Assembly: GCA_026936335.1 (NCBI GenBank)
Contig: JAPMXV010000018.1
Coordinates: 124,001 to 188,000 of the forward strand
Length of the DNA stretch: 64,000 bases
Source of the DNA: Mantamonas sphyraenae STR306
Taxonomy: Eukaryota; Protista; CRuMs
Direction: 5' to 3'
A program made the translations under genes and the position numbers. The notes beneath the pieces are model-generated. The model worked only from the letters and a program-made list of their open reading frames with translations. It did not search any database and had not been told where the DNA came from. Positions 8,715-56,067 of the stretch are shown in pieces (positions within the stretch are counted from its first letter, which is position 1; every line of letters begins with the position of its first letter).

Positions 8715-11700
8715 TCACGTGCTTCCTTCCTTTCGTCGCATCGATTCTTCGATCTGCGCCAGTTTGGCTTGCATGGACTGCACGTGGTGTTCCAAACTCA
8801 CCACACTGCGGATCAGCTCTGCCTTGGGCGCAGATTCCAGCTCCTTCATGCGTGCGTTGAGCGCCGGTGTGCGCATCGTCTTTGTGGCCGTCTTCCCTCC
8901 CGTGGTGTTGCTTTGCCTCGTCGCTGTCGGTCGCGCTTGTCCCATACCACCCCCGGGTGTCTCTGGTGCCAGGCTGGGGGATGGTACAAGCGGCGTGCTG
9001 CTGCTTTGGCCGACGTGCTCCTCGTATTTGCGCATGGCATCCACAAACGCATCGATGCTGGCTACTGTCTCCAACGAGCCCAGCTCCGCACGTGTCTTGC
9101 TGGCCAAATGGCCCACTGTGTGAATGCCCACCGCCTTGAGGAGAGTCCAAGTGCTTGCGCGCACATTCATGTGTGGTCTCAACACCTTGATTGCCGCCTT
9201 GCTCTTCTTCAAAGACGGAAACACGCAGTTCAACGTGCTTGGCGTGTCATCAAAGTGTACCTTTTTGCCCTGTTTGCTTCCGCTGCTGCCCCTCGCCTGT
9301 GTGCCATCCTGTGTCGTTGCGTCCTCGTCCTCCTCTTCGTCCTCTGCCTGCGTGGGTGCGTCTGCGTCAACGCTGGCTCCTTCCACCTCCATGGCATGCC
9401 GTTGCTGCTCCTCACGCTCCCGCTCCTGCTGACTATCTGCATCCAGGGTTGTGTATGTCACCACGTCCGGGTGGTGGTTGCGCATCTCCAACTGATGTTC
9501 TGTCATTGCCCGTGGGTCGTTCAGTCGTGCGCGCTTCTTGTCGGAAATGATCACGTGCACGTACTCGTCTTCGTCGTCGTCGCTGCTATCGTTGCCAGCG
9601 TCGTCCACACTCACCACCTTGCGTTTGCGTCGTCCGCCACTCCCATCGATACTCGGAGGGGTGGTGGTGGTCACTTGCTGTCGCGACGCCACAGGCGATG
9701 ATGATGACCCATCTGCACCCGCACCCGCACCTGTGCCAGAACTTGCGAATCGTCGCCTGTCCCGTCGCACAATGGCAAAGTCTGCCCCATTCTGTGACTC
9801 GGAGTGGCTCAGCTCGTCCTGGATGGATTGGGTGCGATCCAACGCCACACCTTTGCCCTTTCCTTTGCCTTTGCCCTTGGTGTGGCTGCCACTGGCACGT
9901 GTGCGACTGCCATGGATGCGATCCACCCAGCCTGGGAGCGAGATATCAGTGCGCAAGGCAATCTCCCGCAACACAGACTGCAACTGTGCAGGGTACGCAA
10001 AGGAGCGCTCCTTCATGCGCCCAAACGTGTCCTGCCAGAAGCGCAACGTGACATTCTGGATCTTGCGGCTTCGATGCACCAACCCGTGGTGCACCAGCCG
10101 AGTGACCGACTCCAGCGTCGGTGTCTTTTGCTGTGTCTCCTTGTGCAGCTGTGTCAACGCAGCCACAAGTCGTTGCAGCCAGCGACACACACCTCGCACC
10201 AGCGGACGATGGGCAAGTGTTGCTTTCGACGACATCCATCGCTCAAGCGACCGCTGCATCGTCCTGTGGGTTGCCAACACCTTGGCAGTGCTTCCGCCGT
10301 GCTCAAAGAAGCCACCCATCACAACCAACAGCTTTTCGCTCATATCATACATGGCCGCGTGGTCTGGATCCGTGGCACCGGCATCCTCCTTCTCCACCAC
10401 CACCTCCTCATCATTGGCGCTTGTGCTGCTGCCGGGGATCTTGGGCTGACTGGGCTGTGCCATGGCATCCATGTAGTGTTGCGAGCCCAACGGCTGCGTA
10501 TCCATGGTGTCGATGTCATTGCCAGCACGCCCCCCCTCCCCCTCGTCGTCGTCGTCGTCCACCTCATCTTCGTCATCGTCATGATGCGCATCGAGACTGT
10601 GCAATTCCTTGCCCAGGAGCAAGGTGCCTCTTTCCTGGGCCAAGGCGTACGCTGTGTTGAGCTGGTCGACAAGAATGGTGTTGAGCATGCCCACGAGGTC
10701 CAGCAGGGGTTCGGCGTTGTTTGCACTGCTCGTGTTGTGGATGCGGTCCTGCATGGCCGACGAGATGACCAGGGTGCGTTGGATGGTTTCCACCATGTGC
10801 ATGAGCAGCGAAATGGCAGGTCGAGGCAGCTTGTTGCTGGGACTCGTTGACAGTTCTCGCGTCAGCGCACCGCCCAGATCGCGCAGATGGCTGTTTACAC
10901 CCTCGGCTGAGTTGCTGAGGGTGTCCAGCACGCCGTACAGCGACTCCCACCGTGCAAGCGCAGACTCGGACATCTCCATGTGTTGGTGAATGGCCAGGCT
11001 CACGGGAGTGCGCAGGATGTCCACAAAGACGCTGAATCGGCCGTTGCGAAACATGGCAATGGGCATGTTGTCCGAGGCCTCCATCAGAAACACACACATA
11101 TCCTCCCATGTATCCCACGCTGCCTCTTGTGCTCTCTCACTGCCAGAAAGCTGCAGATCTTGCATGTGTCGTGTGTGTGTGCTCAAATCCTCTTTGGACG
11201 GCGTGGGATCCAACCCGAGCAACGCCTGCAGTGTCTGCCGAACGCTGTTCTCCTGCTCATGCCTGGATTGGGCGATGCGCAACTTGAGCAAAAGGTGGAA
11301 CAAAGCCGAACGAAGGGTGCAGTGGGGTTCGTCGTCTGCCGCCGTGGATGCCATCGTGGTGGTGGTGGTGTGGGAAGATGCAGCGGCACCTCCTTGCGCC
11401 TTGGGTGCAACCATGTCTGGCACCAAGTCGCTCAGACGCATCTCGTAGTGTTCCAACGCATCGTGTGTGTCGTCCGTGGCGCCGGAGAGGCACTTGACAA
11501 ACACAGCGAGGACAGTGGAAGCCAGTGCAGGCGGCAGCGAATCGACACACCATGTCATGAAGGAGAGCAGCTTGGAGGTGTGTTCTCCCGTCGCATGGTG
11601 GCCCAGTACACTCAGGATGCGTGTGAAAACGTCTTCCAGAAGTGACACAATGCGAGGGTACCCGCGCACATCGTTGCTGACGTACTGAGAGGACAGCAGC

Positions 11701-13808
11701 ACCTCCATCACGTCGTACATCAGCTCAAAGTGCACCAACACGTCATCGTCAGTCATGCACACTCGCGTGGCATCGTCCATGGCCTCCATGGGCCCCGAGG
11801 ACACGTGCACATGGCCGGCGTGAGGCAACGGCGCCAAGGATCTGCGACGCGACCCTTCGCCACGGATGGGACTGCTGCTCTCTGTATCCATGTTGTCGTT
11901 GAATGATGATGATGATGATGATGTCGACCTGTCTGCATCTGCCTCGTTGGTACCACCGCAGAGCAGCTGCGTCATCAGCTTCACAGATGCTTCTTGTAGG
12001 GGTTGCATCTCGTCAGCGTCGTCGGTGGCATTGAGTATGGTGCTGAGGGGATCGAGAATAAGCGCCTGTTTGCACCCGTCGATGACATAGGCGTGTTCGG
12101 ATTGGGAAAGCGTCTCGTGATGCACAATGGACATGGTGGAGCAGACGATGTGGGACCAGAGGTATGCGACCTGATCACGCACACCGACGTATGCAGAGCG
12201 AGAGAGAGGCACGCTGACAGCCTTGATGATGGATCGTGTGAGGTCAGAGACGAGCAGTTCGAGGATTGTGGTGCGTTTTGTTTGCACGTTGGCCTCGGGC
12301 GCAGCGATGTGACTGCTACTGCTACTGCTACTGCTGCTACTGCTGCTGCTGCTGCCAGTGGTTGTAGCACCGGCTTGTTGAAGTTCATCCATGTCTGCCA
12401 GACGCCGTCGGATGGACCAGTCGGCAAAGAAACGCCAGGACCGAAGGGCGGCAACAAAGACCTTGCGTTTGCTGGACGAGGAGCCCGGTGGGTTGAGCAT
12501 GACCTGCATGATGTTCTGGAACTCGGGGGTACGCTTGAGCACCAAGGCACCACTTCCCAGCATGGCAAATGCATAGCCGACAATGCTTGCCACAAGGGGC
12601 GAGTGTCGCTTGGTCAACGAACGGAGTCCTCGCATGAAGGAGCGCAGACCATCCGACACCGCCTCCTCACTCGTGTCCACTTGGCTCGTGTGTGGCATCT
12701 CTTCCACATCGTTATCCTGTGCATCGTGCAACCTGCGGTGGACAATGGCAAACAGGCGGTCTGCAAGCTGCGTGTCACGCGAGTACAACACTGGCAGTGG
12801 GCTCTGGTGGATGCGCACGTAACTGTCCAGCATCTGCATGAGCACATCCGAACCCGTTTTCACAGACGTTTCGTCGCTGCTGACCAGGTCGACGAAGCAC
12901 GGGGCGGCCCAAATTGGATACGTGACAAGCATGGCCCGTGGGAAGCGCTGCAGCAGGTGCTCAATGGCAGACCGCGACGTAAGGGTGACCATGGGCACAT
13001 TGGAGGTGAGGTACACGTGCGCAGACGCATTGGCCAATCGTTGCAGCAGCGTGGCGCTGAAGAAGCGTCGAGGCAGCACCGAAAGGGCAAAGTGGTTCCA
13101 TGCGTACATCTGCATCGAGTATGGCACAAGCTGGTCTTGCGAACCTTCGGCAATGGTCACCAGTCGGCCGTACAGGGTGTTGATGAAGGCGTCTGTGAGT
13201 GTGTGTGTGGTGGGGAGGCCACGGGTGTCAGCATGATCACTCACCTCGGGGCAAGAACAGTGCAGGGAATGACCACTGGGCTGTGGGTGCACACATGGGA
13301 AACACTCACCCGGGAGCACAGTCCAAATGCGCAGTTTGGGAACGCCGCACAGCACGTTGAACATGCGAATGGCCATGATGGCGAGGTCTTGTTCCTCAGA
13401 ACCTGGGCGCAGCTTCAGATCGTCGCCAAGCACACGCTCAATGGCGTCGCCACTCTTGCCAATCACGGCAGCCACCTGTGTGTCGTCTTCCAGAGTCAAA
13501 ATGGCCACTGCAAGTGCACTGGAGTCAAGGAAACAGCCGGGGGTGTGCCGAAACCGAGTTTTGGCGGGAACGGTGCCTGGGTTTGGCGCGAAAAAACGCA
13601 ACAGGGCCACACGTCAACGGTGGAGGATGCACAGGGATCAAACACGAGGGAAGGCATAGAAAGTGTGCGCATAAAGCACATGGACAAAAAGGATATGATC
13701 AAAGTAGAGTTCCTTGCGTGCCCGTGGGTCTGTGTTTTCGTCAAAAAGCTCGGCCAGCCGCCGAGTCACCTGCTCGGGCGTCATTGGATCGTGATCGTGG
13801 GTGTCCAT
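8715..13808 (-). CDS. RIF1: Telomere/replication-timing protein RIF1; exons 13808-13697, 13513-13310, 13192-8715
   Basis: HEAT-like N-terminus; HRSRKIQNVTLRFWQDTF..YPAQL; MTEHQLEM; PP1-docking KVHF; C-terminal CVFPSL...LLKAVGIHTVGHLA as in RIF1. Intron 1 is U12 AT-AC, intron 2 is GTGAGT-CAG. Confidence 0.85.
13514..13696 (-). other. U12-type (minor spliceosome) AT-AC intron in RIF1
   Basis: 5' ATATCCTTT at 13696; branch TTTCCTTGAC at 13533-13524; 3' CAC ending 13514, 10 nt after the branch motif; removal gives the continuous frame KELYFD-L-AVAILTLEDD. Confidence 0.9.
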
Positions 13809-13990
13809 GACCAATGTGAATGTGCGTGAGTTTGCGCGGGAGCGACACGGCGGGAACAAGTGGGGGAGGCAGTGGTGGTGTCTTCCAGCACGATCACAGT
13901 TGGTGCCGGTGTCGCCTGCCCACACAGAGGCATCATATTGATTGGGGTACTCACCGACGCAAACCGTCCAAATCGTTCACAAAGAACACC

Positions 13991-39498: not shown

Positions 39499-41061
39499 TT
39501 ATGGGTCTGCGTCTGAGCTTGGCTGCGCCCGCGACATGACGACCGGATCCATCTCACCATCGTCATCGTCATCACCATCACCATCACCATCACCACTTTG
39601 CTTGACCTCATCCGCAGGCAGTACAGGCACAAACGCCTGTGTGGACATGGTGGACACTGTGGTGGAGGCCGTGGATGTGGTGACTCCACCCTCCACCGTG
39701 GTGGTCTCCACCTCCACCACCTGTGTCTCCACCACCACTGTCGTCCCTTCCTCCTTCTCTGCCTCGTCCAGAGTGCCCTCTTGTTCCAGGCTCCCCGACG
39801 GTCCCTCTCCACTCGAGGCCAGCGAAGCCTCCCATTCCGCATCCTTCTCCGCCATCAACGCAGCAAACTCCTTCTCCAGTCCCAAAAGCTGGGCCAGCTT
39901 GGTGACCCCTTCGTCCGCCGTGCCCGTGTGCAACACGTCCCGGAACGCACCCTCCTCGTCGCTAAACACAAACTGGTCTCGTCCCACAGCCTCCATGTTG
40001 ATCAGCAGACGCGGGACGTCCGCACCCACCCGTGTCACCAATCCGGCAAAGGGTTGCACCTGAAGCGATGTACCAATCACAATCAGTGCGTGTGCACGCT
40101 GAAAGTCCTGTGCAGACATCGTGTGGAAGCGTCTCGGCAGCGATTCGCCGAAAAACACAATGTCCGGCTTCACCATGCCCCCACACCGTGCACACTTGGG
40201 CACATTTCCACTCATGATTTCCTGGCGCACATCCTCTGTCGAATGCGCCTGCTTGCAGTCTGGATTCACGCAGTGCGACGACGAGAACGATCCGTGCGCC
40301 TCCACAAGCTTGTCACCAGGCATCCCAGCCACTCGTTCCAGCGTATCGATGTTCTGTGTGTAATTACGCAGAAGCATGTTGTTTTGGTGCAGCAGAAGCA
40401 GAAAGTAGTGCACAGGCGTTGGCTTGAAATTCCCTGGGAAAAGGTGAAGGGGGGGGCGACAAACGGAAGGATCGCAAAGGTCAAGGAGCAAACAACCGGG
40501 TGTGTACACGCACACAAGACGTATCCCTTTCTACGACTCCACTCACTGCATATCGCATGCACTGTCCACACACACACATTGCCTCCATGCACACAACATG
40601 CCCATTCACCCGCTGCGAGAGGCTTGTGCAGGTTCCGCGCGCAATTCCCGCAAACACACGTTATCCAAGGATATCTCACGCGCCAGCGTGTAAAACGGCA
40701 ACGGGTTCTCCACAAAGTATTCGATGTCAAAGATGGCTTCCGGGTAGGGCAGGTCATACTTCTCCAGGTTGTCATACAGGCCCGAACCGGGTGTGCGGAA
40801 GTCCGGGATCCCAGCGGACACCGACACCCCCGCACCGGTCATCACAATCACATTCACCGTGCCCTTTTCCTTTTTCACATCCAACAGGTACTGCGCAAAC
40901 CCTTCCAAATCCAACGAAGGCAGAATCTGCTCACGGCCTTTGATGCGCCTGTCCACAAACAAGTTGCCCTGCATGCCCATCAGCGCTGCCTCCAGCTCCT
41001 CCTGCGTCATGTTGCCACTCTCCAACAGTTCGCGTGCCTCTGCAGACAGTTCGTTGCCCAT
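39499..41061 (-). CDS. SIRT2: NAD-dependent deacylase, SIRT2/Hst2 class; exons 41061-40675, 40443-39499
   Basis: MTGAGVSVSAGIPDFRTPGSGLY, YTQNIDTLE, VEAHGSF, KPDIVFFGE, GTSLQVQPFA; the intron splits ARE|LFPG. Confidence 0.93.
40444..40674 (-). other. U12-type AT-AC intron in the sirtuin
   Basis: 5' ATATCCTT at 40674; branch CTCCTTGAC at 40488-40480; 3' CAC ending 40444; removal yields the conserved FYTLARE-LFPGNFKPT. Confidence 0.9.
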
Positions 41062-54900: not shown

Positions 54901-56067
54901 CGTCCCTGTCCACGTACCTTGGCCAGCAATGCCGTGCGCAGGCCTGCGTGGCTCACAATCACGCTGTCGTCGACCTGGATTTGCTGTCCCTTTTCTGCAC
55001 GTTTGCCGTGGTTGGCGTCCACCACGCGTATGTAGGGGCATGTGTGAGCATCACCACAGTCCACCATCCAACCGCACATCTCCTGGTGCCATTGCCGTGG
55101 ACACCCTATGTCCCTGTGGCTCGCATTTCGCCTTGGCAAAACTCACCGCGTGCTTTCGAGCCCGGCAGCAGCTGCAAATTGGTGTCTTCGCTGGGCGAGT
55201 CAACCAGGAACACGCGCTGAGACTGCGTCCATCGCTCCTGCTCGCCTCGTTGCATGCACATGTACTTGCCCGTCAATGAATGCTGTGTGTGAATGTGTGT
55301 GTCCTCCTTGCGTCAGTCTGTGTTGTGCCTCAGGCGCCCTCGCATGTGCCGCCCTCGCTCCCCGCCGCCGTCCCGCGTCAAGGATACACCACCCGGGCCG
55401 CCGTACGGCATGATGGCGCCACACCCTGGCCATTTCACACGTACCCTCAGTTGCACCACCTGTCCAAAGGTCACCTTCGATCCAAAGAAGCGACCTCCCT
55501 CTTCGCCCGAGCTGTGCAGAGGCCCATAAAACAAACGTGCGCCAATCCGGTGTCAGTGCCTCCCTCGTCGTCGTCGTCGTCCCCCAACCCCCCCCCCGTT
55601 TGGGACGCTAAAAAGGTTGATGTCCATCCAACATACCCTGCATTCTCTGCGGCCCCTTCGCCCGTGCCATCCTCTGTGCTGTTCAGGGTGCCGTCTCCGC
55701 TGCTGCTGCTGTGTTCGCTCTTGGAGTGGCCCTGGTACTTTTCCGTGATCACCCACAAGTTGGCCTTGAACCCAGACACGGGCTCCACAAACATCCCGTC
55801 GTCCTGGTTTTCAATGCACACAATCTCTCCTGCACGTGTGGACATCCGTGTCACACCCACAACGCGTGTGTGTCAGCGTTGCGGCGTCCCTCCTCGTGTC
55901 GCAAGGCTGCACCGCTACACCCACCGCCCCCGCCACTCACCATCGGCACAATTCAGGAACCGTGAATTTTCCGTTACGCCGTTGCGCACAATCGACAGAT
56001 ACACCTCGTCGCCGATGCTCACAAACGGAGTCTCGGCCACTACGCCGCTGTCTTCAAGCGACTGCAT
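45994..56067 (-). CDS. ITPR: Inositol 1,4,5-trisphosphate receptor-type Ca2+ release channel; introns 55940-55830, 55636-55512, 55444-55283, 55146-54995, 54917-54778; three -1 frame breaks (~53498, ~50445, ~47150)
   Basis: SIGDEVYL, FGQVVQLRH and FHLRHVLSGKYL MIR motifs; RIH regions; KQLCEGHN...QN.LR, ETMQGPCVGNQ; LNILFGIIVDTFSELR, CFICGI...HIQHEHNMWDY. Confidence 0.88.

Follow-up and report, generated by a model that had tools for sequence, protein, structure and literature searches.

The window (the whole 64-kb stretch of Mantamonas sphyraenae DNA that was analysed) carries on its minus strand a long open reading frame, probably that of a RIF1 orthologue, which runs to a stop codon at 8715-8717. 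Upstream of this frame, and separated from it by 183 nt that on their sequence are a textbook U12-type AT-AC intron, is a short first exon. The features of the locus are as follows.

13697-13808, minus: coding part of exon 1 (37 codons plus one base, phase-1) in open frame from a putative start codon, ATG, at 13808
13514-13696, minus: U12-type AT-AC intron of 183 nt; donor, branch site, spacing and frame read directly
13688-13696, minus: 5' splice site ATATCCTTT (motif read), the presumed pairing target of U11 and then of U6atac
13533-13538, minus: GGCTGT, differing by one base from the GGTTGT box, whose complement ACAACC lies in the linker of the U12 candidate
13524-13533, minus: branch-site motif TTTCCTTGAC, in which 13525 is the predicted branch A (motif and predicted U12 duplex)
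13514-13515, minus: terminal AC, the first AC after the branch, 11 nt past branch A 13525 (read directly)
13508-13509, minus: alternative in-frame AG acceptor, 17 nt past the branch A, the use of which would remove two codons (frame check)
13310-13513, minus: exon 2, which opens the long RIF1-like frame and ends at a GTGAGT donor at 13309 (from sequence)
8715-13309, minus: rest of the RIF1-like gene, probably interrupted near 13309-13200 by one or two GT-AG introns that are short and in frame, then a single long ORF ending with the stop at 8715-8717

The RIF1-like gene and its AT-AC intron

Read in minus-strand order the two junctions are ...TACTTTGATC|ATATCCTTTTTG ... CGGCTGTTTCCTTGACTCCAGTGCAC|TTGCAGTGGCC..., and the features of the AT-AC subtype occur together: the donor /ATATCCTT, a TTCCTTRAC branch site, a spacing of 11 nt and a terminal AC, with the frame restored. 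In a script-based frame test, joining 13697 to 13513 keeps the 1,600-codon RIF1-like ORF in frame as far as the stop at 8715. If the intron is left in, the frame of exon 1 meets a stop 19 codons into it, and the long ORF itself offers its first in-frame ATG only at 13376. Motifs, AC and restored frame thus confirm the AT-AC intron with U12-type donor and branch that the preliminary description had placed at 13514-13696; that splicing actually joins 13697 to 13513, and that this AC is the exact acceptor, we infer from the sequence. Within the 64-kb window the motif RTATCCTT is seen five times, compared to 0.5 expected from shuffles, and only the two of these sites that are copies of ATATCCTT are followed downstream, on the same strand, by TCCTTGAC.

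The identity of the gene was examined with its exons searched separately, exon joins being used only in the tests of reading frame. At default thresholds Pfam gave no match for the long ORF; a sub-fragment matched Rif1_N (PF12231) weakly (E 0.07, 12.5 bits, under the 23-bit cut-off). Word searches with the protein returned no relatives (one was swamped by a poly-serine tract) and HMMER, run over 1.84 billion representatives, gave 0 matches. In a protein atlas, on the other hand, the four best named clusters are Rif1_N families (0.87, with 174-187 shared features). The label RIF1 given in the preliminary description is therefore plausible, the best named clusters all being Rif1_N, although the Pfam match is weak and the sequence searches were empty; we treat the long ORF as a probable RIF1 orthologue.

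Two further observations concern the surroundings of the intron. Just past exon 2, two GTGAGT donors (13309 and 13244, minus strand) lie inside a stretch that is open in frame, and the interval 13200-13309 (minus) probably harbours one or two in-frame GT-AG introns of very small size, separated by an exon of 36 nt. On the other side, the ATG of the RIF1-like gene (minus, 13808) and that of a RING-TPR gene (plus, 13820) stand head to head, 11 nt apart; because of this spacing each 5' UTR must overlap the coding sequence of the other gene, if both ATGs are used. Such an arrangement fits a very compact genome.

Frequency of U12-type introns in the genome

The published assembly of M. sphyraenae comprises 25.06 Mb in 78 contigs, with 59% GC (PMC10492846). 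Combinations of U12-type motifs were counted over this genome and compared to reversed-pattern controls.

ATATCCTT alone: 168 genome-wide; control 12
ATATCCTT, then TCCTTRAC within 20-400 nt: 10 genome-wide (2 in the window); control 0
ATATCCTT, then CCTTRAC within 20-500 nt: 26 genome-wide (25 distinct donors); control 2
GTATCCTT, then TCCTTRAC within 20-400 nt: 5 genome-wide; control 3
GGTTGT, 0-6 nt, CCTTRAC: 24 genome-wide; control 27

Thirteen of the 25 distinct composite sites are intron-like, with an intron-like body, flanking open frames and strong predicted pairing to U12. These AT-AC candidates are 13514-13696 and 40444-40674 in the window, together with loci L026/L079, L030, L037, L043, L044, L045, L046, L055/L076, L058/L077, L059/L078 and L073. 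The five sites with the GT-type donor GTATCCTT are coding-like and pair poorly with U12, and their count is at background; the genome-wide scan for GTATCCTT plus branch motif revealed no convincing GT-AG minor intron. When the search is begun from the box and branch motif, ATATCCTT lies 100-260 nt upstream in 9 of the 24 matches to GGTTGT plus CCTTRAC, and GTATCCTT upstream in 0/24. The number of ATATCCTT sites alone was rejected as a measure of frequency: most of the 168 appear to be antisense coding sequence, and the reversed control differs in dinucleotide content. On inspection of 42 such sites, a branch motif was lacking in 37, which resemble antisense coding sequence. Extrapolation from the inspected sample gives about 20 AT-AC introns, and ~25 at most. 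An energy-only scan for variant branch sites was also tried, and abandoned as too noisy.

The second AT-AC intron of the window interrupts a sirtuin gene.

40444-40674, minus: AT-AC intron in a SIRT2-type sirtuin, with ATATCCTTGG, a GGTTGT box, CTCCTTGAC and an AC 37 nt past the branch A

The exons that flank it match positions 1-53 and 57-150 of the Pfam SIR2 profile, which therefore continues across the junction; by sequence this intron, too, is real, as had been proposed. A word search for a transcript-derived copy of the Mantamonas sirtuin gave none, the best match being 49% identical. Two other candidates lie in genes verified by Pfam, one of the STX6 family (STX6_10_61_N and SNARE domains) and the other encoding enolase, and in both the profiles stay continuous.

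The 64-kb window holds 33 GTGAGT sites and, by the count in the preliminary description, about 25 introns. If the ~25 introns and 33 GTGAGT sites in 64 kb are extrapolated, as a rough figure, to some 10,000 introns genome-wide, 13-25 minor introns amount to ~0.1-0.25% of introns. Minor introns make up 0.276% of introns in human (PMC10639083) and 0.05% in fly; the share in M. sphyraenae is typical, falling within the ordinary range, and the genome is not minor-intron-rich. The suggestion that minor introns are unusually frequent here does not survive these counts: the share lies below the 0.5% that the preliminary description itself had taken as the bound of a typical genome, and short of a Physarum-like expansion, for which it would have to be well above ~0.5-1%. 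With about 14-20 introns distributed over ~390 windows, the chance that some window holds two is about 1/5 to 2/5; given that number of windows, the two AT-AC introns seen here are an ordinary sampling coincidence.

Two sites outside the set of 13 deserve mention. At C27:97887-98752 (L060) a GGTTGT...CCTTGAC combination lies 202 nt downstream of ATATCCAC, which may mark a minor intron whose donor is degenerate. At 55377-55387 of the window (minus) GTATCCTTGAC is accompanied by an upstream GGTGGT run, with a U12 pairing of -14.5 kcal/mol; the site lies inside a GTACGT-type, major-looking intron of an IP3R-like gene, has no upstream U12 donor and is probably due to chance.

Candidate snRNAs and branch-site pairing

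Minor snRNAs were sought with Rfam models over the genome (25,061,354 bases, 78 contigs), only 40-50 pre-filtered candidates being scored. A U6atac candidate (C58:259739-259839) reaches 29.7 bits with the Rfam model, compared to a gathering score of 33; among its features are the diagnostic AAAGGAGAGA, UUAGC, GACAAGGAUG and a terminal U run. A U12 candidate (C33:69288-69448; L042:1501-1661, minus) scores 26.5 bits at a relaxed threshold, below the Rfam gathering score, and shows GAGUAAGGAAAA, AAUUUUUGG as an Sm site and a 3' hairpin whose loop reads UACUUU. No U11 and no U4atac was found among the 40-50 pre-filtered candidates scored, even at E<=10; because so few were scored, their absence from the results says little about absence from the genome. 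The upstream regions of the U12 and U6atac candidates yielded no common promoter motif.

Because the genome contains convincing candidates for both U6atac and U12, a minor spliceosome is probably present, and on this point the preliminary description, which had supposed an active one and named all four minor snRNAs as the means of checking it, is supported by U12 and U6atac, while U11 and U4atac did not appear. In a pan-eukaryotic survey a minor spliceosome was taken as present where two minor snRNAs and at least 3 minor introns were found (PMC10639083); by that rule Mantamonas, with its two candidates and its set of AT-AC introns, would count among the genomes that have one.

The U12 candidate also bears on a feature shared by the introns themselves. 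A GGTTGT-type box lies 0-7 nt upstream of CCTTRAC in 13/13 AT-AC candidates, compared to only 1/32 background CCTTRAC sites (those without an upstream ATATCCTT), a comparison with some circularity, since the box had been one aid in classifying the 25 composite sites. RIF1 has the variant GGCTGT, STX6 has GGTTG and one other intron GGTTT. GGTTGT is the complement of ACAACC, which in the U12 candidate is located after AAGGAAAA and which the Rfam alignment places in an unpaired linker before the next stem. The 13 introns give predicted U12 duplexes of -13 to -20 kcal/mol, and doubtful, coding-looking and GT-type sites give -4.6 to -9.7; the branch region of the RIF1-like intron gives -15.7 kcal/mol with the U12 candidate, compared to a window median of -8.4, the predicted pairing of GGCUGUUUCCUUGAC in the intron with GAGUAAGGAAAACAACC in U12 being nearly continuous. 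At the R position of the branch motif, 10/13 introns have G (CCTTGAC).

The distance from branch to acceptor is variable. In U12-type introns it is usually about 10-15 nt, and at most ~45. The RIF1 intron has a distance of 11 nt, the enolase and STX6 introns 19 nt, that of a TPR gene 30 nt and the sirtuin intron 37 nt; the unbroken SIR2 profile fixes the sirtuin acceptor, and the last 36 nt of that intron contain only one other A. For a CIA2-like gene the value may be as large as about 66 nt, and an AC at 9 nt is likewise in frame. In several introns (40444-40487 in the window; L037; L043; L044; L046) the sole U12-type branch motif lies 30-66 nt from the AC, and the enolase intron (L076) skips two nearer ACs. 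Both a role for the GGTTGT box and the use of long branch distances we infer from these arrangements. Evenly balanced, in our judgement, is the broader proposal that minor splicing in Mantamonas has been reshaped, such that it would act on essentially only AT-AC introns, recognize the branch region by two blocks (CCUURAC, and GGUUGU with ACAACC, up to ~15 bp in all) and tolerate spacings from 11 to ~66 nt.

Readings of the junction and origin of the set

Three other readings of the RIF1-like junction were weighed. The nearest to the AT-AC intron retains its U12-type donor and branch but places the acceptor at the AG at 13509-13508, giving AT-AG termini, an intron of 189 nt and the removal of two further codons. 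This AG is in frame, stands 17 nt from the branch A and has a TTGCAG context. Against it, the canonical terminal pair of ATATCC donors is AT-AC, the AC at 13515-13514 is the first after the branch and lies at the ideal 11 nt, and those sister introns that are backed by Pfam or by frame terminate in AC; we consider the AG acceptor improbable. A major-type intron can also be drawn, from a GT donor at 13769 (CAG|GTGACT) to an AG at 13477-13476, in which case the U12-like motifs would lie inside it by chance. Donor and acceptor are in frame with each other, and GTGACT is similar to the GTGAGT donors common in the window, so that the earlier statement that there is no convincing GT-AG solution has to be qualified: an in-frame pair does exist, but it lacks a branch motif or other support. 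The AG is set in purine-rich, coding-looking sequence (GGAAGACGACACACAG), and neither a branch nor a pyrimidine signal accompanies it; an intron of 294 nt would be large compared with the short GT-AG introns visible beside the RIF1-like gene; and the full three-part U12 signature, which occurs only ~13 times in 25 Mb, would be left unexplained. On these grounds a major-type intron is barely credible.

The remaining reading dispenses with a coding intron altogether: translation would begin at ATG 13376, and the motifs upstream would belong to a 5'-UTR intron or be fortuitous. In its favour, no homologue of exon 1 is detectable, and the ATG at 13808 lies just 11 nt from that of the divergent neighbour at 13820. 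A start at 13376, however, discards ~45 open in-frame codons of exon 2, the weak Rif1_N match would by its offset put the start of the domain near 13513, and the AT-AC pair restores the frame exactly; moreover, an intron in the 5' UTR would be U12-type all the same. We regard this reading as highly improbable.

The preferred reading, to which we would give a probability of about 0.85, is that 13696-13514 (minus) is a U12-dependent AT-AC intron between coding exons 1 and 2 of a probable RIF1 orthologue, and that it belongs to a small and probably ancient set (~13-25 introns, nearly all AT-AC) and not to an expansion. If so, the U11/U12 di-snRNP would bind the donor ATATCCTTT through U11, while U12 would bind the branch region, GAGUAAGGAAAACAACC pairing almost continuously with GGCUGUUUCCUUGAC so as to leave the A at 13525 bulged. 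U6atac, by way of AAAGGAGAGA, would then displace U11 from the donor, which would be attacked by the branch A at 13525, and exon 1 would be joined to 13513, past the first AC, 11 nt on.

A further question is whether the set was gained or retained. That minor introns are unusually frequent through lineage-specific gain is a possibility to which the two AT-AC introns in a single 64-kb window, and the 168 copies of ATATCCTT compared to 12 in the reversed control, could be thought to point. Most of the ATATCCTT sites, however, lack any branch motif and resemble antisense coding sequence, GT-type sites are at background, only 13/25 composite sites are intron-like, the intron bodies show no extended similarity, and STX6 is an old AT-AC intron gene; we hold gain on this scale to be very unlikely. 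An introner-like origin was rejected: comparison of the bodies of the 13 introns revealed only short, low-complexity matches, and recent copying of a single element is therefore not their source. As to retention, STX6 has an AT-AC U12 intron that is conserved between fly and human (PMC2831892), and because the STX6-family gene of Mantamonas also carries one, retention is favoured over gain; this match at the level of the gene points to retention as the better reading, and the lineage-specific gain put forward earlier is not supported. Human SPCS3, too, is a U12-intron gene (PMC3958305). GT-AG minor introns turn into major-type introns far more readily than AT-AC ones (PMC2831892), and because they do so, an AT-AC-only residue in an intron-poor genome would be explained; the small set described here fits that published idea.

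Comparison with other minor-intron systems reveals both likeness and difference. U12-type AT-AC introns of animals and plants have the 5' splice site ATATCCTT and the branch site TTCCTTRAC (bioRxiv 10.1101/2020.10.12.336362, PMC2831892). Those of Mantamonas share with them identical donor and branch motifs, 11 nt to the AC, no need for a pyrimidine tract and low abundance, but differ in the extra GGTTGT-type box and in the preference for G over A at the R position. Published ratios of GT-AG to AT-AC minor introns range from 3:1 to 1:1 (PMC2831892), whereas Mantamonas has no convincing GT-AG members. Drosophila melanogaster, with 19 introns of which 8 are AT-AC (PMC2831892), likewise has a small residual set that includes an STX6-family AT-AC intron, but has kept a GT-AG-type majority where Mantamonas seems to be AT-AC only. 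Physarum polycephalum and Mantamonas both display a lineage-specific change on the intron side that matches a feature of the U12 snRNA (bioRxiv 10.1101/2020.10.12.336362). In Physarum minor introns number in the thousands, the core of the branch motif has changed to TTTGA, for which mutations in U12 compensate, and the spacing is a tight 10-12 nt (bioRxiv 10.1101/2020.10.12.336362); Mantamonas, in contrast, has about 13-25 introns, has kept the canonical core with a second pairing block added, and often has a spacing of 30-66 nt.

With these data a minor spliceosome that looks functional would be placed in CRuMs, a group that branches deeply near Amorphea. The literature searched makes no mention of minor splicing in CRuMs, and neither Mantamonas nor CRuMs is named in the main text of the pan-eukaryotic survey of >3,000 genomes (PMC10639083). 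Should the reshaped system prove true, it would be a second and different case, after Physarum, of co-adaptation between introns and U12, as well as the first minor splicing described in CRuMs, and the conserved GGTTGT box provides a simple and testable hypothesis for how U12 finds the branch site. There is a practical consequence as well: gene models that bar AT-AC introns would cut short or disrupt RIF1, SIRT2, enolase, STX6 and some ten further genes of this genome.

The intron bodies have one further peculiarity. TGCATG occurs in 18 copies in the 2.0 kb of AT-AC intron bodies and is present in 11/13 introns, the RIF1 intron being without it. The background is 0.63 per kb in the window, with none in the 80 nt that follow each GTGAGT site of the window. 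The excess may reflect a minor-intron-specific element or an effect of composition.
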